Sequence record: NC_062581.1
Strand: one strand, 5' to 3'
DNA: 64,000 nucleotides
Position numbers and translations under genes: made by a program. The notes under the pieces were generated by a model. The model was given only the letters and a program-made list of their open reading frames with translations. It ran no database searches and had not been told where the DNA came from. Of the stretch, positions 2,959-36,255 are shown piece by piece. Position 1 is the first letter of the stretch. Every line of letters begins with the position of its first letter.

Positions 2959-3240
2959 CTACTTCTTAATATTAGCTATATCTTTCTCAACTTTAGCAAG
3001 ATCAGCTTTAAATTTCTTTAAAGCTTTAGTATCATCATCTTCATCACTGAGATACCATGATTCGCAAATAGTGTCGTAAATCTTTTCTTTAGCGCTGTCG
3101 CCATTGGTAGCCGCATTTAATATCTCCATGCGGCTAATCATTGGTTCAACTTCTTTTGGAAAAGCAATAGCTAATGTACGTACACGAGTTGACTGACAAC
3201 CCGCTTTATGAATACGTTGATCAAGGGTTAACGCTTTCCC
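2959..3240 (-). CDS. open frame probably reached by -1 frameshift from the upstream head-protein gene (or a 60-aa ORF from ATG 3141)
   Basis: Frame is open from before GGGAAAG (3240-3234) to the stop at 2959, with no ATG/GTG/TTG in the 33 codons before 3141. Confidence 0.55.
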   Translation of the reverse strand, partial: GKALTLDQRIHKAGCQSTRVRTLAIAFPKEVEPMISRMEILNAATNGDSAKEKIYDTICESWYLSDEDDDTKALKKFKADLAKVEKDIANIKK

Positions 3241-4844
3241 GAATAGGCTTCCGTACTAACGTCGTCTTCTTCATCCAGTGCATCTACTTCCGGATCAGTC
3301 TCCTCTACAAGAGGACCTTCACCGGTAGCGGCATCACCGATTGCTTCTTCTGCTTCACCAACTGTAGGCTCTTCTAGAGCTGCTGGTGGTGCATCAACTA
3401 CTTCAGGCTTGAACCGGTCGACTTGGATCTGACTGGCTGCCCAGATAGCGTACAGAGAGAACAGAGCCTGGGTAGATAGTTCACGGCGCGATGCATCAGG
3501 GTAATCTTTACCAGCCTTATCCATCAGAACCATGTAATCCCAATAAGTAGACTCAGGGAAGTAAATACGGCAGATCAATTGACCGAAGGCAACGTATTCA
3601 TTTTCCAGATGTTCTGGGCGCACTGCACGAATAGCATCAACTACTTTATCACGCAGACCATCTACTTGCAGTTCAGCCAAAGTACCTTGTTCTGCTTGCG
3701 ACAAGAATGCTTCAATAATGTCTTTTCGACGGGAGCGTTCAGCATTATCCATAGCTGCTTGTTGAATCAGCGGATAAACGTTTTGGAACTTCTGAATGAA
3801 ATAAGCTTTACGTTCTTCCAAACGATCCAAAGTTTGTGGGCCACTTTCTTCCAGAGCAGAACCAAGTACTACAGACAGATCACCTTTAGCAGCACGCCAC
3901 TGTGGTTCAACGTCACCGTTCAACCAAACTACTAACCGACGGTTTTCGATTGCATTGGCTGCATCAGAACGCAGAATCAATACGCCTTTAGTTTGGTCTT
4001 CAGCGCGTCGTTGATAAGCACGTAGCAGGTATGCACCCAACATCTCGTGGAGCAAACGTAGTACGTGAATCCACTCTTCATAAGTAACCGATTCACTAAT
4101 AGCATCAACTGGGTTCTCACCTAGGTGACCACACAGGAAATAAGCTAACAGCAAAGCATCAATGTTGAAAGGTGTATTAGTGCCTACAACAAAATCCAGT
4201 TCACCTACAGTAACAGCTTTGTTGCGGTTGAACAAGTCAGCGTACGTACGGCTAATAACTTCTGGATCTACACTGAGTAGCCATTCTGTAATTTGTTCAC
4301 GTTCAGCATGTGGGTTGTTGATAGAGACCATTTCGATGATCTGTTCAACACCTTGACCTGGGAGAATAAAAGTACGGTAGCTAGCAGCAGGAGTTACGTT
4401 TGCATAGTTCTGCAAATGAGAAGTCAAACGTGGTTCACTGTGCAGTGGATCGTATTTAAAGATGTCCGCCCGAATATCTGCAGAGGTAGAAATCTTTTGG
4501 CGTTCGTTAAAGTCACGAACCATTGAATCAATACCTGGGACAACAACGTTAGATACGTTGAATTGAATTTTACCCAGTGCAGCAGCTACTAGACCAACCA
4601 TGTCTTTATTGTCTTCTTCGACAGTAATAGGTTGTTCTTCATTCATTTCGGTGAAGTGATCTTCAACCGATGTTACGAGTTCTTCAGATACAGGTGCGCC
4701 GGTAGGGGCTTCATCTACAGCGTAGCCGCTAGCGAACTGAGCAATAGGAAACTCAGGATTCGGCACGACCAGAACTTGACTACCTTCAGTCAGTTGCTGT
4801 GCAATCAGTTTTACCGACTGCACGGTGTTGGCGATATCAGACAT
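3228..4844 (-). CDS. virion head protein (phiKZ gp177 / SPN3US gp243-like)
   Basis: 538 aa, acidic tail with an AALE candidate cleavage site; synteny between the protease/beta'C genes and RNAP beta. Confidence 0.65.
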   Translation of the reverse strand: MSDIANTVQSVKLIAQQLTEGSQVLVVPNPEFPIAQFASGYAVDEAPTGAPVSEELVTSVEDHFTEMNEEQPITVEEDNKDMVGLVAAALGKIQFNVSNVVVPGIDSMVRDFNERQKISTSADIRADIFKYDPLHSEPRLTSHLQNYANVTPAASYRTFILPGQGVEQIIEMVSINNPHAEREQITEWLLSVDPEVISRTYADLFNRNKAVTVGELDFVVGTNTPFNIDALLLAYFLCGHLGENPVDAISESVTYEEWIHVLRLLHEMLGAYLLRAYQRRAEDQTKGVLILRSDAANAIENRRLVVWLNGDVEPQWRAAKGDLSVVLGSALEESGPQTLDRLEERKAYFIQKFQNVYPLIQQAAMDNAERSRRKDIIEAFLSQAEQGTLAELQVDGLRDKVVDAIRAVRPEHLENEYVAFGQLICRIYFPESTYWDYMVLMDKAGKDYPDASRRELSTQALFSLYAIWAASQIQVDRFKPEVVDAPPAALEEPTVGEAEEAIGDAATGEGPLVEETDPEVDALDEEDDVSTEAYSGKR

Positions 4845-4855
4845 GATGTTTCCTT

Positions 4856-20786: not shown

Positions 20787-21062
20787 ATGAACAAAGAACT
20801 GAATCGCTGGCTAGTGTCAAATGAACAAGTTTATTATACTGAACAAGAAATCAATCAGCTAGTAAACAAACCCTTAGATCCACAAGGGGCTAACATTGAA
20901 GAAGATAATGCTCCACAGGCTCAGGGTGGATTAAAAGCTTTAATCTCCACTGCAGACTTACCTAAAAATCCGAAAGAGGGTGAGTCATATCAAGTTGGAC
21001 CAAACCATTGGGTTTGGGCAAATGGACGATGGATGACGACTGAAGGATTGTATGGTCATTAA
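20787..21062 (+). CDS. hypothetical protein
   Basis: 91 aa; C-terminal LPKNPKEGESYQVG..WVWANGRW module of a type seen in phage structural proteins. Confidence 0.6.
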   Translation: MNKELNRWLVSNEQVYYTEQEINQLVNKPLDPQGANIEEDNAPQAQGGLKALISTADLPKNPKEGESYQVGPNHWVWANGRWMTTEGLYGH

Positions 21063-21063
21063 T

Positions 21064-21084
21064 AGCTTCCCCTAGTGGGAAGCT
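21064..21084 (+). terminator. hairpin terminator
   Basis: AGCTTCCC-CTAGT-GGGAAGCT then TTATGTCG. Confidence 0.65.
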
Positions 21085-21102
21085 TTATGTCGTCACTCCA
21101 AA

Positions 21103-21123
21103 AAATCTCAGATCTATATTACT
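21103..21123 (+). promoter_or_regulatory. phiKZ-type early promoter (variant A)
   Basis: AAATCTCAGATCTATATTACT, identical to 51219-51239. Confidence 0.8.
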
Positions 21124-33303: not shown

Positions 33304-35441
33304 CCAGGAATACGGTTAACAGTTTTAGGGATTTCAAATTGCTTACTATCAATGACAATATCGAATTGTTCAAAAGCTTTCTGGAGAGTACCGTGCATTA
33401 GACGATGTTCATCAAGCTCTTCAGGTTGTTCTTTGATGAACGATTCAAATGCTTCCTTTTGTTCAAAGGGAGATTTAACACCTGTGATTTCTTCAACCAT
33501 TGATTGACTCCAAGCAAGGATGTCGGCTGAACGGGTAGAGATGTTAGGTTCCTCACCTGTATCCAAAGTAGCAGTAAAAACAATTGTCTGTGAATCCTGA
33601 CCAATCCGATAGATACGAGCAATAGCTTGTTCTAGAATATAGCTACGGAAAGGGGAATTCAAAATCAACATGGTGTCGGCCATGGTAAGGCGTACAGCTG
33701 TTGCTAAAGAAGCGTATGTAGCCAACAATGGGTTTAGCTTAGGGTCTTTATCAAAACGAGTAACAATAGAAGCTAGCTCGTTAGATGTTTTACCATAAAC
33801 TGCAATTGGAGACATGCCCAATTTACGTACATGCACTTCAGAAGCTTCTAGCGCTTCAACAAATGAAGTGAACATGATGGTTTTCTTTTGGGTAGATTCG
33901 ACAATACCAACCCAGTCTACATACGGAACCATTGCAACGTGACATTCAATACGTTTACCACCCAAGATACGCCCAAGGGTTTCTCCTTGGATCTTAAGCA
34001 TAACGTATTTAATAGCTGACTTAACATCACGGAACTCATGAATCATTGATTGCGGTAGCGATGGACCAAACACCAGTTTCTCATAACGGTTAGTTGCTTT
34101 GATTTCTTCCCCTGTAAATCTAGGGTCAGGGTTAGCAATAACAATCTTGAGCACTCTACGGTATTCGTTGTACGCAGCAATCTGTTCTTTAGTCTTTAAC
34201 TTAGATTCATGAATAGCAAGACACTGTGCCCAATACTTATCATCTTGGGGTTTGCGATCTTTATAGAACTTCACCCGTTCTCGAATGAACTGTTCCATTA
34301 CTACTTTAATAGCAGCCAATGTAAAGTCTTTACCATTAGGAATCTGAATCTTGTAAGGTTTCATAATGGGTGGCTTTAGACCAGTTGATTCTTCCGTCTT
34401 AGCAATAAAGAAAGACATGAATCCCATTCGATGTCGGATGATATCTAAACCTTTACCGCCCTCTTTACCAAAGATCAGTTTAAAGCGTGCCTCAACCTCA
34501 GGAGTAAACAATGGATCAGATACGGCCATCAGTGTGATGAGTTCTGTACCAAGTGCCTTCACGGGCGTACCAGAGGCTAGGATGTTATCTTTAGAACCTA
34601 ACGCTTTAACACATGCAATGTACAATTGTGTTTGTAGCGACTTAGGATCGTTCATGTTGTGGCATTCATCTAGGGCTGTAAAGATTTTCAGTCCTTTGAA
34701 TACACCTGAATGAATAATGTCTAAGAAATTAGCCAGCCATTGGTAGTGTACAACAATTACTTTTTCATTGTTGTATGGACGACCCATATCCGATGCCCAA
34801 ACAGATGGTCCTTCCTTATACATCTCTTCTAGAGAAACAGTATCGGAATAATCATTCGATTCCATAGAAGGAACCCAAACTGTGTTGACTGCTCTTTTCT
34901 CAACAAAGAAGATCATTCGATCGGCATGAAGCATCTCACCAATCATTGTGGTCATGGCTGTTTTGCCAGTACCAGGTTCAGCGTGTAACAGATCACCCGT
35001 TAAGTTCCACTGATCAAGTCGATGGTTATAAGACTTGAAATAATCCATCTGTTCTTGTTTAGGGGTAAACTTAAATTTCTCTAACTGCTTGAAGTCTAAT
35101 CGGCCCGGCTTATTAGGATCTGGTTTAGCATAAGCTTGACCAATCCATGTGGACTCTATCATTGCTGCCCGAATAGCAGCGGCTTGCTTGACAGAAATGT
35201 ACCGAGAACGATAGTTCATTACGCTATCAAGAATGTACATGAAGTCAGGAGCAAAGAACTTATAAAAACGTAGTTCCGTACTTGATGCATGGTTAAAAAT
35301 GTTAGATGCAATACGTGAGGTTTTCCAGTGCTTGGAAATGTCTCGGACGAGGTGGCTCCCGTTTACGCCAGAAAGGATGATTTCGTTGCCTTGTTCTTTG
35401 GCAACTACGACGCCCATCACACGTCTGAAATAGCTCTGCAT
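33291..35441 (-). CDS. SNF2-family (SF2) helicase/ATPase, phiKZ gp203-like
   Basis: AEPGTGKT, LDECHN, ASGTP, QAIARIYRIGQ. Confidence 0.88.
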   Translation of the reverse strand: MQSYFRRVMGVVVAKEQGNEIILSGVNGSHLVRDISKHWKTSRIASNIFNHASSTELRFYKFFAPDFMYILDSVMNYRSRYISVKQAAAIRAAMIESTWIGQAYAKPDPNKPGRLDFKQLEKFKFTPKQEQMDYFKSYNHRLDQWNLTGDLLHAEPGTGKTAMTTMIGEMLHADRMIFFVEKRAVNTVWVPSMESNDYSDTVSLEEMYKEGPSVWASDMGRPYNNEKVIVVHYQWLANFLDIIHSGVFKGLKIFTALDECHNMNDPKSLQTQLYIACVKALGSKDNILASGTPVKALGTELITLMAVSDPLFTPEVEARFKLIFGKEGGKGLDIIRHRMGFMSFFIAKTEESTGLKPPIMKPYKIQIPNGKDFTLAAIKVVMEQFIRERVKFYKDRKPQDDKYWAQCLAIHESKLKTKEQIAAYNEYRRVLKIVIANPDPRFTGEEIKATNRYEKLVFGPSLPQSMIHEFRDVKSAIKYVMLKIQGETLGRILGGKRIECHVAMVPYVDWVGIVESTQKKTIMFTSFVEALEASEVHVRKLGMSPIAVYGKTSNELASIVTRFDKDPKLNPLLATYASLATAVRLTMADTMLILNSPFRSYILEQAIARIYRIGQDSQTIVFTATLDTGEEPNISTRSADILAWSQSMVEEITGVKSPFEQKEAFESFIKEQPEELDEHRLMHGTLQKAFEQFDIVIDSKQFEIPKTVNRIPGWMR

Positions 35442-35519
35442 GGTTAAACCCTTGTTCTTTATTAGAAGTCATAAGATTAGCCTCAGTGTAGTTTAAGTAA
35501 TAAAGTACGCAAGAATGCC

Positions 35520-35690
35520 AATACTATAGACAAGGGTACGCGCGAATGCGCAGACCGCGAGGAGGTGATCCAGTCGTTAATCCCAAACCAGGTGCTTTAC
35601 CAAGCCATAGCTGAGAAGCTACGAAAGCCTGACTACGAACCTTGTCTATTAGAGTCTGACCTCTGTTGGTTACCTTCGGGTAACCATTAT
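35520..35690 (+). ncRNA. candidate structured non-coding RNA complementary to the 16S rRNA 3' end
   Basis: 10-bp closing stem 35526-35535/35640-35649; internal hairpins including a GAGA tetraloop; AGGAGGTGATCCAGTCG at 35560-35576; UUCG hairpin at 35667-35686. Confidence 0.5.
35667..35686 (+). terminator. UUCG hairpin terminator
   Basis: TGGTTACC-TTCG-GGTAACCA then TTATG. Confidence 0.65.
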
Positions 35691-35702
35691 GTCCTAACAC
35701 AA

Positions 35703-35723
35703 AAAATCTCACGTCTATATTAC
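35703..35723 (+). promoter_or_regulatory. early promoter (variant A)
   Basis: AAAATCTCACGTCTATATTAC. Confidence 0.75.
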
Positions 35724-35751
35724 ATATTCACACTATCAAAAGGAATTTACC

Positions 35752-36255
35752 ATGTCCCATAATCCAATGTCTGAATTGCACCAACAACAGATCACCGGTG
35801 GTACTAACCCACTCACTAACATCTCTGTGTCCAGTGTAGCGGGTAAAGTGAGCTTTGGTACCGAAGCTGATCCTACCGAAGTATATCAAGATTGGCCTGC
35901 GCGTTTTCATGTGCTGGACTCAGTTGACTTCTTGACTTACGAACAAGTGTTAAAAGCGTTTACTGACGAAGATACTTGGTTTAAACTTGATGCAGTTCAT
36001 GACGCTATTAATGAAGCAGGTCAACGCTTGGTTAATATAGGCTATGATGACGATATTGGTACTGCTGTTAAACGCATGACTGTGTCGCTGCCTGGTATTA
36101 TGCCACCCGATGTATTGAAAGCACTGTACGAAAAAGTGCGTGATGCTGGCCATCTACTTTATCCGGTACGCCGTATGGGTATTGACAGTACTACGTTTAC
36201 CGTCTTCACTATTGTCCCAGGATATGCAGCTCTTGCACAGCACTCCAACAGTTGA
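35752..36255 (+). CDS. hypothetical early protein
   Basis: 167 aa, AAGGA SD. Confidence 0.7.
   Translation: MSHNPMSELHQQQITGGTNPLTNISVSSVAGKVSFGTEADPTEVYQDWPARFHVLDSVDFLTYEQVLKAFTDEDTWFKLDAVHDAINEAGQRLVNIGYDDDIGTAVKRMTVSLPGIMPPDVLKALYEKVRDAGHLLYPVRRMGIDSTTFTVFTIVPGYAALAQHSNS

Follow-up and report, generated by a model that had tools for sequence, protein, structure and literature searches.

A conserved structured RNA of Pseudomonas jumbo phages that probably latches onto the small ribosomal subunit

The mRNAs of nucleus-forming jumbo phages have to exit a protein shell before they can vie for the ribosomes of the host, which raises the question of how these phages take over translation. A locus of the Pseudomonas jumbo phage Psa21 (genus Tepukevirus; genome, 305 kb; host, P. 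syringae pv. actinidiae) bears on this question. Here, a 310-bp gap between the SNF2 helicase gene PSA21_271 (− strand, ATG at 35441) and PSA21_272 (+ strand, ATG at 35752) carries a long complement of the 3′ end of 16S rRNA, and we asked what this gap encodes and whether its product may act on the ribosome. A sequence-only reading of the 64,000-nt stretch of record NC_062581.1 that was analyzed (the window, whose coordinates are those of the Psa21 record minus 186,000) had proposed a structured RNA, transcribed from the + strand, that binds or sequesters 30S subunits. We found that the gap holds a structured small RNA gene that is kin in principle to other RNAs with an extended complement to 16S rRNA. 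The gene is family-wide, and the observation is in this respect larger than first reported. From its sequence and that of its relatives, this conserved phage RNA probably latches onto the small ribosomal subunit.

Conservation and fold of the element

Homologues were gathered by pattern scans of IMG/VR, by a search anchored on the helicase gene, and by BLAST against GenBank phages. We found 21 distinct homologous copies; their carriers are without exception nucleus-forming jumbo phages of Pseudomonas or contigs of 200 to 325 kb that look like them. The named carriers are phiKZ, phiPA3, 201phi2-1, PS119XW, HPP-Temi, Phabio, Noxifer, Viktualia, D6, and RVTF4; other carriers are four more Psa21-like jumbo contigs, L061 (helicase 68% identical), L062-L064 (helicase 52 to 53% identical), and two metagenome contigs, the latter being the only new members that a wider metagenome scan yielded. 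In phiKZ, the element lies between gp203, the helicase, and gp204 (NC_004629, about 212,854-213,036), a gap in which no feature is annotated in any of the 47 phiKZ-like records (phiKZ and 46 near-identical ones), and the copy of 201phi2-1 lies at about 229,020-229,200 of NC_010821. The syntenic gap shows 83% column identity among Psa21, D6, and RVTF4. The adjoining helicase of Psa21 is only about 38 to 44% identical in amino acid sequence to those of phiKZ, 201phi2-1, Phabio, and Noxifer, and the element must thus be old within this phage group. A phiKZ-type pattern (AGGGGGTGATCCAGYC..AACTACG) had no match in a set of 185,579 bacterial and archaeal species, each represented by one genome.

To describe the fold, four helices were specified manually on an alignment restricted to the phiKZ/201phi2-1/phiPA3 clade, and a covariance model was built from that. 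This model recovered all eight unseen copies of the Psa21 clade with E values of 1e-8 to 1e-13. In the 19-sequence alignment fitted to the model, 94.5% of the cells were paired, and 24 of the 28 pairs were changed on both sides. In 500 column shuffles, not one of the five measures taken was ever reached, and sliding the 3′ partners by 1 to 3 columns left 25 to 41% of the cells paired. For the held-out clade, the corresponding values were 96.9% and, after sliding, 28 to 45%, with 66 cells that differ from 201phi2-1 on both sides and still pair. Helix 3 was 100% paired with compensatory changes in 5/5 pairs, and helix 4 was 95.5% paired with compensatory changes in 7/7 pairs. The fold was not recovered by MAFFT and RNAalifold on 16 copies (6 pairs) because that alignment is not structure-aware. 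The stems were thus found to covary among the 19 aligned copies, and the core of the complement is kept in all 21, as the earlier reading had asked of relatives; we regard it as close to certain that the element is a structured RNA.

In the fold, P1 closes a junction that holds P2, a long unpaired strand, a three-way P3 domain whose tetraloop is of the GNRA type, and ACUACG, which is also unpaired; P1 is followed by a small variable hairpin and then by a strong terminal hairpin (Table 1). The covariation is easily seen in P1, which reads GACAAGG/CCUUGUC in Psa21, CCAAGG/CCUUGG in phiPA3, AGCAAGG/CCUUGCU in phiKZ, AAGAAG/CUUCUU in L119, and GUGCAAGG/CCUUGCAC in Noxifer. The loop of P3b is GNGA in 18 of the 19 aligned copies, and all four bases occur at N.

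Table 1. Features of the RNA element and of its borders in the Psa21 window
Feature	Position	Strand	Remarks
Middle-promoter motif, A-rich tract + TAC	35497..35508	+	C lies 20 nt ahead of the inferred start
Start-site motif TATAG	35525..35529	+	Inferred transcription start G35529
P1 5′ arm GACAAGG	35529..35535	+	Pairs with 35640-35646; helix 1 91.9% paired, both-side changes in 8/9 pairs
P2 hairpin GCGC-GAAU-GCGC	35540..35551	+	Covaries: GCGC/GCGC, GUGC/GCAC, GCAC/GUGC, GGCUAC/GUAGCC (Noxifer)
J2/3 single strand GAGGAGGUGAUCCAGUCGU	35559..35577	+	Complementary to 16S 1523-1541; unpaired in the consensus
P3 domain	35589..35631	+	Closing helix 35589-35593/35627-35631 around the P3b hairpin 35608-35621; GAGA tetraloop
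J3/1 ACUACG	35632..35637	+	Unpaired, nearly invariant; complementary to 16S C1510-G1514 (helix 45 5′ strand)
P1 3′ arm CCUUGUC	35640..35646	+	Also complementary to 16S 1499-1505
P4 small variable hairpin AGAG...CUCU	35651..35664	+	Same position in each lineage, unrelated sequence in each
Terminator hairpin GGUUACC-UUCG-GGUAACC, then AUUAUG	35668..35691	+	TATG 35688-35691 doubles as late-promoter motif of the downstream operon
Early-promoter-like TCTATATTAC of the PSA21_272 operon	35714..35723	+	Outside the RNA

Several structural details given earlier for Psa21 needed adjustment. The two strings of a perfect 10-bp closing stem, ATAGACAAGG (35526-35535) and CCTTGTCTAT (35640-35649), are present as described, but with the inferred start site at G35529 only seven of the ten stem pairs (GACAAGG/CCUUGUC) fall inside the RNA. 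Of the three hairpins named within the segment, GCGC-GAAT-GCGC and TAGCT-GAGA-AGCTA were confirmed as P2 and P3b, whereas GCTT-TACC-AAGC (about 35594-35605) is present but unconserved, being missing from D6, RVTF4, and L006. The C(UUCG)G hairpin said to follow the segment (GGTTACC-TTCG-GGTAACC, 35668-35685) was also confirmed, but it is generic, one of eight such modules in the window, and not specific to the RNA. We also considered GACCUCU (35659-35665) as an internal anti-Shine-Dalgarno-like partner of GGAGGU and rejected it, as it is missing in the L061, L119, and 201phi2-1 lineages.

In the lineage of 201phi2-1 (L066, about 3020-3075), L119, L117, and L094, two upstream segments, UAGGU and GGUAC, are alternative partners of GUACCUA, the P3 3′ strand. 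In L094, all three segments have changed in concert, to UAGAU, GAUAC, and GUAUCUA, which suggests that two alternative conformations are maintained in this lineage. With regard to a riboswitch or attenuator leader, which would also need a mutually exclusive antiterminator pairing, the observations consist of a P1-closed junction with a hairpin after it and of these covarying alternative partners in the one lineage.

A comparison with Rfam gave no hit at the gathering threshold in the whole window, none significant at E ≤ 10 in the gap, and none in six relatives, and neither a tRNA nor a transfer-messenger RNA was found. The closest point of contact was a chance-level match to Rfam family RF01867, CC2171 (Caulobacter), which shares the string AGGAGGUGAUCCAGU with the window. 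The element scored 10.3 bits against this family, for which the gathering threshold is 75 (E = 8.8), and only the motif and a terminal hairpin align, so that the element does not belong to the family.

The complement of the 16S rRNA 3′ end

The Pseudomonas 16S 3′ end with the start of the spacer (AACAAGGTAGCCGTAGGGGAACCTGCGGCTGGATCACCTCCTTA followed by ATCGA) was found as an exact match in at least 120 genome contigs, nearly all of Pseudomonas and close relatives, with the P. syringae group included. Against this verified end, AGGAGGTGATCCAGTCG, which we confirmed at 35560-35576, is complementary at 16 of 17 positions, the sole difference being a U opposite G1526; the earlier count of 14 identical nucleotides, and 16 of 17 with one G-U, was correct. 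The 14-mer occurs once in the window, where 0.24 matches are expected even when two mismatches are allowed, and no other site complementary to the motif is present in the window. The target on 16S rRNA consists of the anti-Shine-Dalgarno tail and, at the base of helix 45, of the 3′ strand.

This complement is the most conserved portion of the RNA and is unpaired in it. The sequence AGG(A/G)GGUGAUCCA is present in 21/21 copies, and most of them go on with G(C/U)C. The number of contiguous pairs with Pseudomonas 16S 1523-1542 ranges from 14 in Phabio to 20 in phiKZ and is 16 to 20 in 19 of the 20 copies computed. In Psa21, the duplex has 19 contiguous pairs and a calculated energy of −36.9 kcal/mol, for which 6.6 kcal/mol must be spent on opening the strand. 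Across the copies, the duplex energies are −26.6 to −38.2 kcal/mol, compared with −8.7 kcal/mol for GGAGG and −12.2 kcal/mol for AAGGAGGU, and no more than 5 to 8.5 kcal/mol is needed to free the strand from the fold. According to the modeled fold, the conserved strand would be an accessible seed flanked by covarying helices, as in trans-acting small RNA genes.

The variation within the duplex is informative. Four types of substitution occur: A/G opposite U1541, A/G opposite U1537, C/U opposite G1526, and, in Noxifer, C/U opposite G1525. All four retain the pairing with 16S rRNA as G·U wobbles, an outcome that is unlikely by chance (about 0.005 by a rough estimate in which about one-quarter of random substitutions would do so, with few events and a shared phylogeny). 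In addition, the complementarity starts at U1540-A1542, the mature 16S end, with no consistent extension into the spacer. The complementarity to the 16S end thus looks to be under selection, and we consider 16S rRNA the probable partner of the conserved strand, as far as can be judged from sequence comparison.

The strand might instead be conserved for a partner other than 16S rRNA, such as a protein, another RNA, or a tertiary contact, with the 16S complementarity a relic of captured antisense ribosomal DNA (rDNA). An invariant loop sequence is also typical of a protein-binding site, dedicated RNA-binding proteins of the phage nucleus have been described (PMC10542519), and the two co-linear 16S-like stretches of the RNA, the second of which is treated below, could stem from an inverted rDNA fragment. 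However, every substitution within the motif is exactly of the kind that pairing to a fixed 16S sequence allows, and the complementarity halts where mature 16S rRNA does. The element is not a continuous fragment of an inverted 16S gene, as there was no match to the Rfam small-subunit rRNA models at E ≤ 10, and the P3 domain of about 55 nt, which has no 16S counterpart, separates the two stretches. A relic would also have to have kept its sequence while the neighboring helicase diverged to the extent given above, which argues for selection. We consider a partner other than 16S rRNA improbable.

An ordinary ribosome-binding site of an unannotated small open reading frame (ORF) is another possible source of such a motif, and a precedent is known. 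The rreB and rreR transcripts of alpha-proteobacteria are small mRNAs with a 17-nt Shine-Dalgarno sequence, followed by a short ORF of 14 to 18 codons, and rreB has been shown on the 30S subunit (PMC5711450). In Psa21, a GTG-started ORF of 65 codons (35565-35762) overlaps the element, and short coding sequences for hypothetical proteins (about 30 to 50 codons, on either strand) are annotated across the RNA in HPP-Temi (L128, 1440-1858) and Viktualia (L252, 1540-1629). However, the GTG of the 65-codon ORF sits inside the Shine-Dalgarno core itself. In agreement with the earlier observation that a properly spaced start codon is lacking, Psa21 has no start codon 3 to 15 nt past its GGAGG core, and 16 relatives do not share one: no ATG, GTG, or TTG occurs at this distance in 10 of the 16 copies, and the others have non-homologous TTG or GTG codons that open ORFs of 3 to 25 codons. 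Insertions and deletions of 2, 3, and 5 nt at the element separate close relatives and disrupt any frame, and the substitutions track base-pair covariation, not codons. The annotated hypothetical coding sequences are probably spurious calls. We conclude that the complement is not the Shine-Dalgarno sequence of an ORF, and the chance that it serves as an ordinary or rreB-like ribosome-binding site appears minimal.

The sequence-only reading had also noted a second match, CTACG-A-ACCTTGT, as a mirror of the other side of helix 45, and we confirmed it at 35633-35645. CUACG is present in 17 of the 19 aligned copies; CUACG(G) is complementary to 16S 1510-1514, with an extension to 1508 in phiKZ, phiPA3, PS119XW, and L061, and CCUUG is complementary to 16S 1501-1505. 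When the segment of 14 to 19 nt made up of J3/1 and the P1 3′ arm was slid along the complete Pseudomonas 16S sequence (1,513 windows) for each of 14 lineages, 1492-1515 was the best window in 8 of them and was among the top 1 to 4% in the remaining ones. The second match thus recurs in most lineages, with 16S about 1499-1514 as the best site for 8 of the 14, but it is looser than the first. The blocks CUACG and CCUUG are 1 to 3 nt apart in the phages versus 4 nt in 16S rRNA, so any such helix would have a small bulge. Moreover, ACCTTGT is primarily the 3′ arm of P1, which reads CUUCUU in the L119/L117 lineage; because this arm covaries with its partner, the fold by itself accounts for ACCUUGU. 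The 5′ arm of P1 resembles ACAAGG of 16S rRNA. We regard the second complement as a real but looser feature that fits either an antisense-rDNA ancestry or a strand exchange with helix 45.

The bare 17-mer proved unusable as an identifier of the RNA, as its matches are mostly in coding sequence, where GAG GAG GTG ATC CAG reads E-E-V-I-Q. Likewise, GAGGAGGTGATCCAG[CT]C is common within coding sequence across IMG/VR contigs (L014-L054), and in a recurrent family of 30- to 45-kb contigs with GAGGAGGTGATCCAGCC, the motif is inside a 346-codon ORF. A scan for the enterobacterial-type complement (..CCAAYC) gave more than 120 matches, none of which was a convincing homologue. One site in L131, an IMG/VR contig of 163,965 bp, carries AAAGGGGGTGATCCAACCGCA (about 4830-4850, − strand), which over 20 nt is complementary to a 16S end of the enterobacterial type (GGUUGG) and has the same central G·U; by the covariance model, its surroundings rate no better than chance (E = 0.63). 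The string AGGGGGTGATCCAATC occurs in two unrelated families of small viral contigs (L134, 6254-6269; L142, 5618-5633), where it overlaps the TGA stop of a gene and is directly followed by an intrinsic terminator, probably by coincidence. In 201phi2-1, a weak second match of the model (L066, 1803-1909; 17.4 bits, E = 0.02), situated about 1.1 kb upstream of the copy and with AAGGAGGGGGAGUUCCUCCC in its sequence, resembles a plain hairpin.

Transcript ends, strand, and neighboring genes

The borders of the element resemble those of a transcription unit. In nearly all copies, an A-rich tract with TAC precedes the G of TATAG by exactly 18 nt (16/21) or 20 nt; a recognizable TAC is absent in L011 and Noxifer among the 21 copies. 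TATAG itself is present in 20 of the 21 copies, and Noxifer has TATG, the canonical late-type motif, at the same place. Published middle promoters of phiKZ have AAanTTACc centered near −24, and its late promoters have TATG with G as +1 (PMC4666361); another published promoter motif has TACT about 22 nt upstream with an A-repeat ahead of it (PMC8244752). The 5′ end was placed at G35529, the last base of TATAG and the first of the closing stem. At the other end, every homologue finishes in a terminator hairpin, the sequence of which differs each time. With these ends, the predicted RNA is 149 to 184 nt long across the copies and 162 nt long in Psa21. By these motifs, the element looks like a short noncoding transcription unit of its own, with inferred ends.

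The terminal hairpin belongs to a module that recurs in the window, which holds eight strong hairpins directly followed by TTATG[TC]C, at least five of which start within about 35 nt of a stop codon on the same strand; the module at 35668-35691 follows no ORF. The early-promoter-like TCTATATTAC occurs exactly five times in the window, each time upstream of a gene and on the + strand, and 12 times with at most one mismatch versus 4.2 expected. Three times, the hairpin module is followed by TCTATATTAC after 27 to 28 nt (559/587, 21085/21113, and 35687/35714). The RNA therefore fills the slot of an upstream gene and finishes at a normal operon boundary. This three-part boundary (520-596, 21045-21122, and 35668-35723) consists of the hairpin, TTATG[TC]C, which combines a terminator tail with the TATG of a late promoter, and the early-promoter-like AAATCTCAnnTCTATATTAC, and its recurrence offers a simple segmentation of the Psa21 transcription units.

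The orientation of the promoter and terminator motifs, together with the GNGA and UUCG loops, supports the + strand as the RNA strand, again at the level of sequence motifs. The sequence-only reading had rested the strand on tetraloops and G-U pairs; the loop argument stood, whereas the wobble counts (24 G·U versus 16 A·C cells, several of them from local misalignment) were insufficient alone. Its own alternative, an anti-Shine-Dalgarno decoy in the leader of the helicase mRNA if the − strand is transcribed, fared poorly. A functional − strand could be such a leader, or a mimic of the 16S 3′ end acting as a decoy for factors or nucleases, and the folding scores of the two strands are nearly the same (z = −2.75 and −2.65), with the wobble counts indecisive. 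However, apart from the TAC of L011 and Noxifer, the promoter, start motif, and terminator are + oriented across the 21 copies, and the GNGA tetraloop and the UUCG loop read properly on the + strand only. The helicase has a conserved TATG start motif of its own (35473-35470), 29 nt from its ATG, and in the L062-L064 lineage, other + strand genes lie between the element and the helicase. The helix 45 pairing, too, is not reproduced on the − strand. We thus find a role of the − strand very unlikely.

A further question is whether the RNA is a unit in its own right or the leader of the operon that follows it. In a cis-acting leader, transcripts from the middle promoter would read through the hairpin into the PSA21_272 operon. 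For the downstream cistrons, the structured leader and its extended Shine-Dalgarno sequence would then be either a platform on which 30S subunits load or stand by, or a brake. The element is always upstream of a gene cluster and on the same strand, the next gene begins 20 to 40 nt past the hairpin in L119, L117, and L094, and ONT-cappable-seq revealed many small RNAs from premature termination in 5′ untranslated regions (UTRs) of phiKZ and 201phi2-1 (PMC10914365, PMC11512511). On the other hand, the hairpin is the standard gene-end terminator of the phage, and promoter motifs proper to the downstream operon, late (TATG) and early (TCTATATTAC), come after the hairpin in Psa21 and phiKZ. A helix of 14 to 20 bp would hold the subunit rather than hand it over, as illustrated by rreB, the translation of which was impeded by its 17-nt Shine-Dalgarno sequence (PMC5711450). 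The downstream genes also vary between lineages. On balance, a leader function in cis seems unlikely, albeit less so than a partner other than 16S rRNA.

Regarding the neighboring genes, PSA21_271 matched the Pfam domains Helicase_C, ResIII, and SNF2, and the other neighbors had no match in Pfam. The 5′ region of the helicase gene, CCTTGTTCTTTATTAGAAGTCATAAGATTAGCC (35450-35482), which includes the late-type TATG of the − strand, is almost invariant in Psa21, D6, and RVTF4, a conservation that exceeds the apparent need of a short 5′ UTR.

A possible action on the 30S subunit

Taken together, these features are compatible with the following course of events. A noncoding RNA of about 160 nt would be made from the + strand of its own unit (about 35529-35690) from the middle phase of infection onward, would be exported from the phage nucleus, and would then meet 30S subunits. 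The free tail of 16S rRNA (1530-1542) would be its landing site. With a duplex far stronger than any Shine-Dalgarno helix of an mRNA, the RNA would dock on the platform and occupy the anti-Shine-Dalgarno sequence, and the bound subunits would be withdrawn from initiation led by Shine-Dalgarno sequences or altered in it, that is, captured or reprogrammed. We slightly favor this sequence-based scheme as a whole, from synthesis and export to an altered initiation. The physiological outcome of the RNA on the 30S subunit is much less certain than the identity of its partner; it might also shield the 16S end or obstruct factors that bind to that end.

In phiKZ, as reported, the genes are transcribed by phage RNA polymerases, the replicating DNA resides in a nucleus-like structure, and the mRNA is exported to host ribosomes (PMC10612078, PMC10542519). 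As mRNA must leave the phage nucleus to meet ribosomes, a co-transcriptional sensing of 30S subunits by the junction and its terminator (a "30S riboswitch") is implausible.

A more speculative extension is that the RNA invades helix 45. After landing on the free tail, it could zip into both strands of the helix base, CCAGYC(G) pairing with 1523-1529 and CUACG(G)..CCUUG with 1499-1514, while its own P1 would open in exchange. If this were true, the invader would remodel the 3′ minor domain of the host 30S subunit or of 16S precursors, and ribosomes could be switched off or marked, or the 16S end shielded from 3′-end-directed nucleases or hibernation factors. We consider such an invasion doubtful.

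Several points weigh against an RNA that acts on host subunits in this way. In the mature 30S subunit, 16S 1499-1529 is folded and partly buried, and pairing beyond the free tail is thus doubtful. Psa21 genes use Shine-Dalgarno sequences themselves (e.g., AAGGA ahead of PSA21_272), so that a blanket blockade of the anti-Shine-Dalgarno sequence would harm the phage too, and the effect must be partial, timed, local, or otherwise aimed. Titrating tens of thousands of ribosomes would demand very high expression. No copy was found within 2.5 kb of the helicase gene in Klebsiella, Serratia, Ralstonia, Vibrio, and Erwinia relatives, among them Eowyn, Totoro, RP31, BONAISHI, and RAY, nor at that distance in EL, which is itself a Pseudomonas phage. 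The pair statistics derive from an alignment fitted to the model, and all copies are related, so their counts are not independent events.

Among known systems, the element is most readily compared with rreB/rreR, which are also short transcripts with at least 16 to 17 nt complementary to the 16S 3′ end, far past a normal Shine-Dalgarno sequence; CC2171 is probably of this type. However, rreB and rreR are chromosomal and translated, whereas the element is encoded by phages and has no conserved ORF at the spacing of a ribosome-binding site. Its motif is also set within a conserved multi-helix fold, and the opposite strand of helix 45 has a complement of its own in the RNA. The 6S RNA, which sequesters RNA polymerase by mimicking an open promoter, offers a likeness in logic only: in both cases, a structured RNA would imitate the ligand of a core machine, here a "perfect" Shine-Dalgarno mRNA, and hold the machine. 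The machine, the fold, and the origin all differ. In Haloferax, a fragment of Val-tRNA binds the 30S subunit and competes with mRNA (PMC5711459, PMC11009984), with the decoding site reported as its binding site (PMC11009984). Like the phage RNA, it is a noncoding RNA proposed to act on the small subunit itself in competition with mRNA binding, but it is a processing product of a host tRNA and forms no long duplex with the 16S 3′ tail.

Noncoding RNA candidates of phiKZ and 201phi2-1 have been cataloged by Grad-seq and ONT-cappable-seq (PMC8545117, PMC10914365, PMC11512511), and many of them are, like the element, short units with a terminator soon after the start site. Those discussed in the text of these reports lie elsewhere (the p40 5′ UTR, the PHIKZ298 3′ UTR, and upstream of gp182 and gp277), and the phage RNA may be among the 17 phiKZ or 11 201phi2-1 candidates of the supplementary tables. 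In the searchable literature, to which the supplementary tables of noncoding RNAs do not belong, we found no description of this RNA; none of the searchable papers joins the motif with "phage", treats the gp203-gp204 gap as an RNA, or mentions its complementarity to 16S rRNA. From the same phage family, the early phiKZ protein gp014 is reported to be stably complexed with host ribosomes (PMC10914614, PMC11849849); it shares the general target with the element but differs from it in being a protein.

The factors known to date to touch the ribosome in these infections are all proteins, gp014 among them, and the element would be the first RNA of a bacterial virus, as far as we could find, proposed to pair with rRNA itself. 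Among its carriers are the field's laboratory model phages, phiKZ, phiPA3, and 201phi2-1. As judged from its sequence, the element is a compact natural RNA module that should bind the Pseudomonas 30S subunit very tightly and may be of use as a tool.

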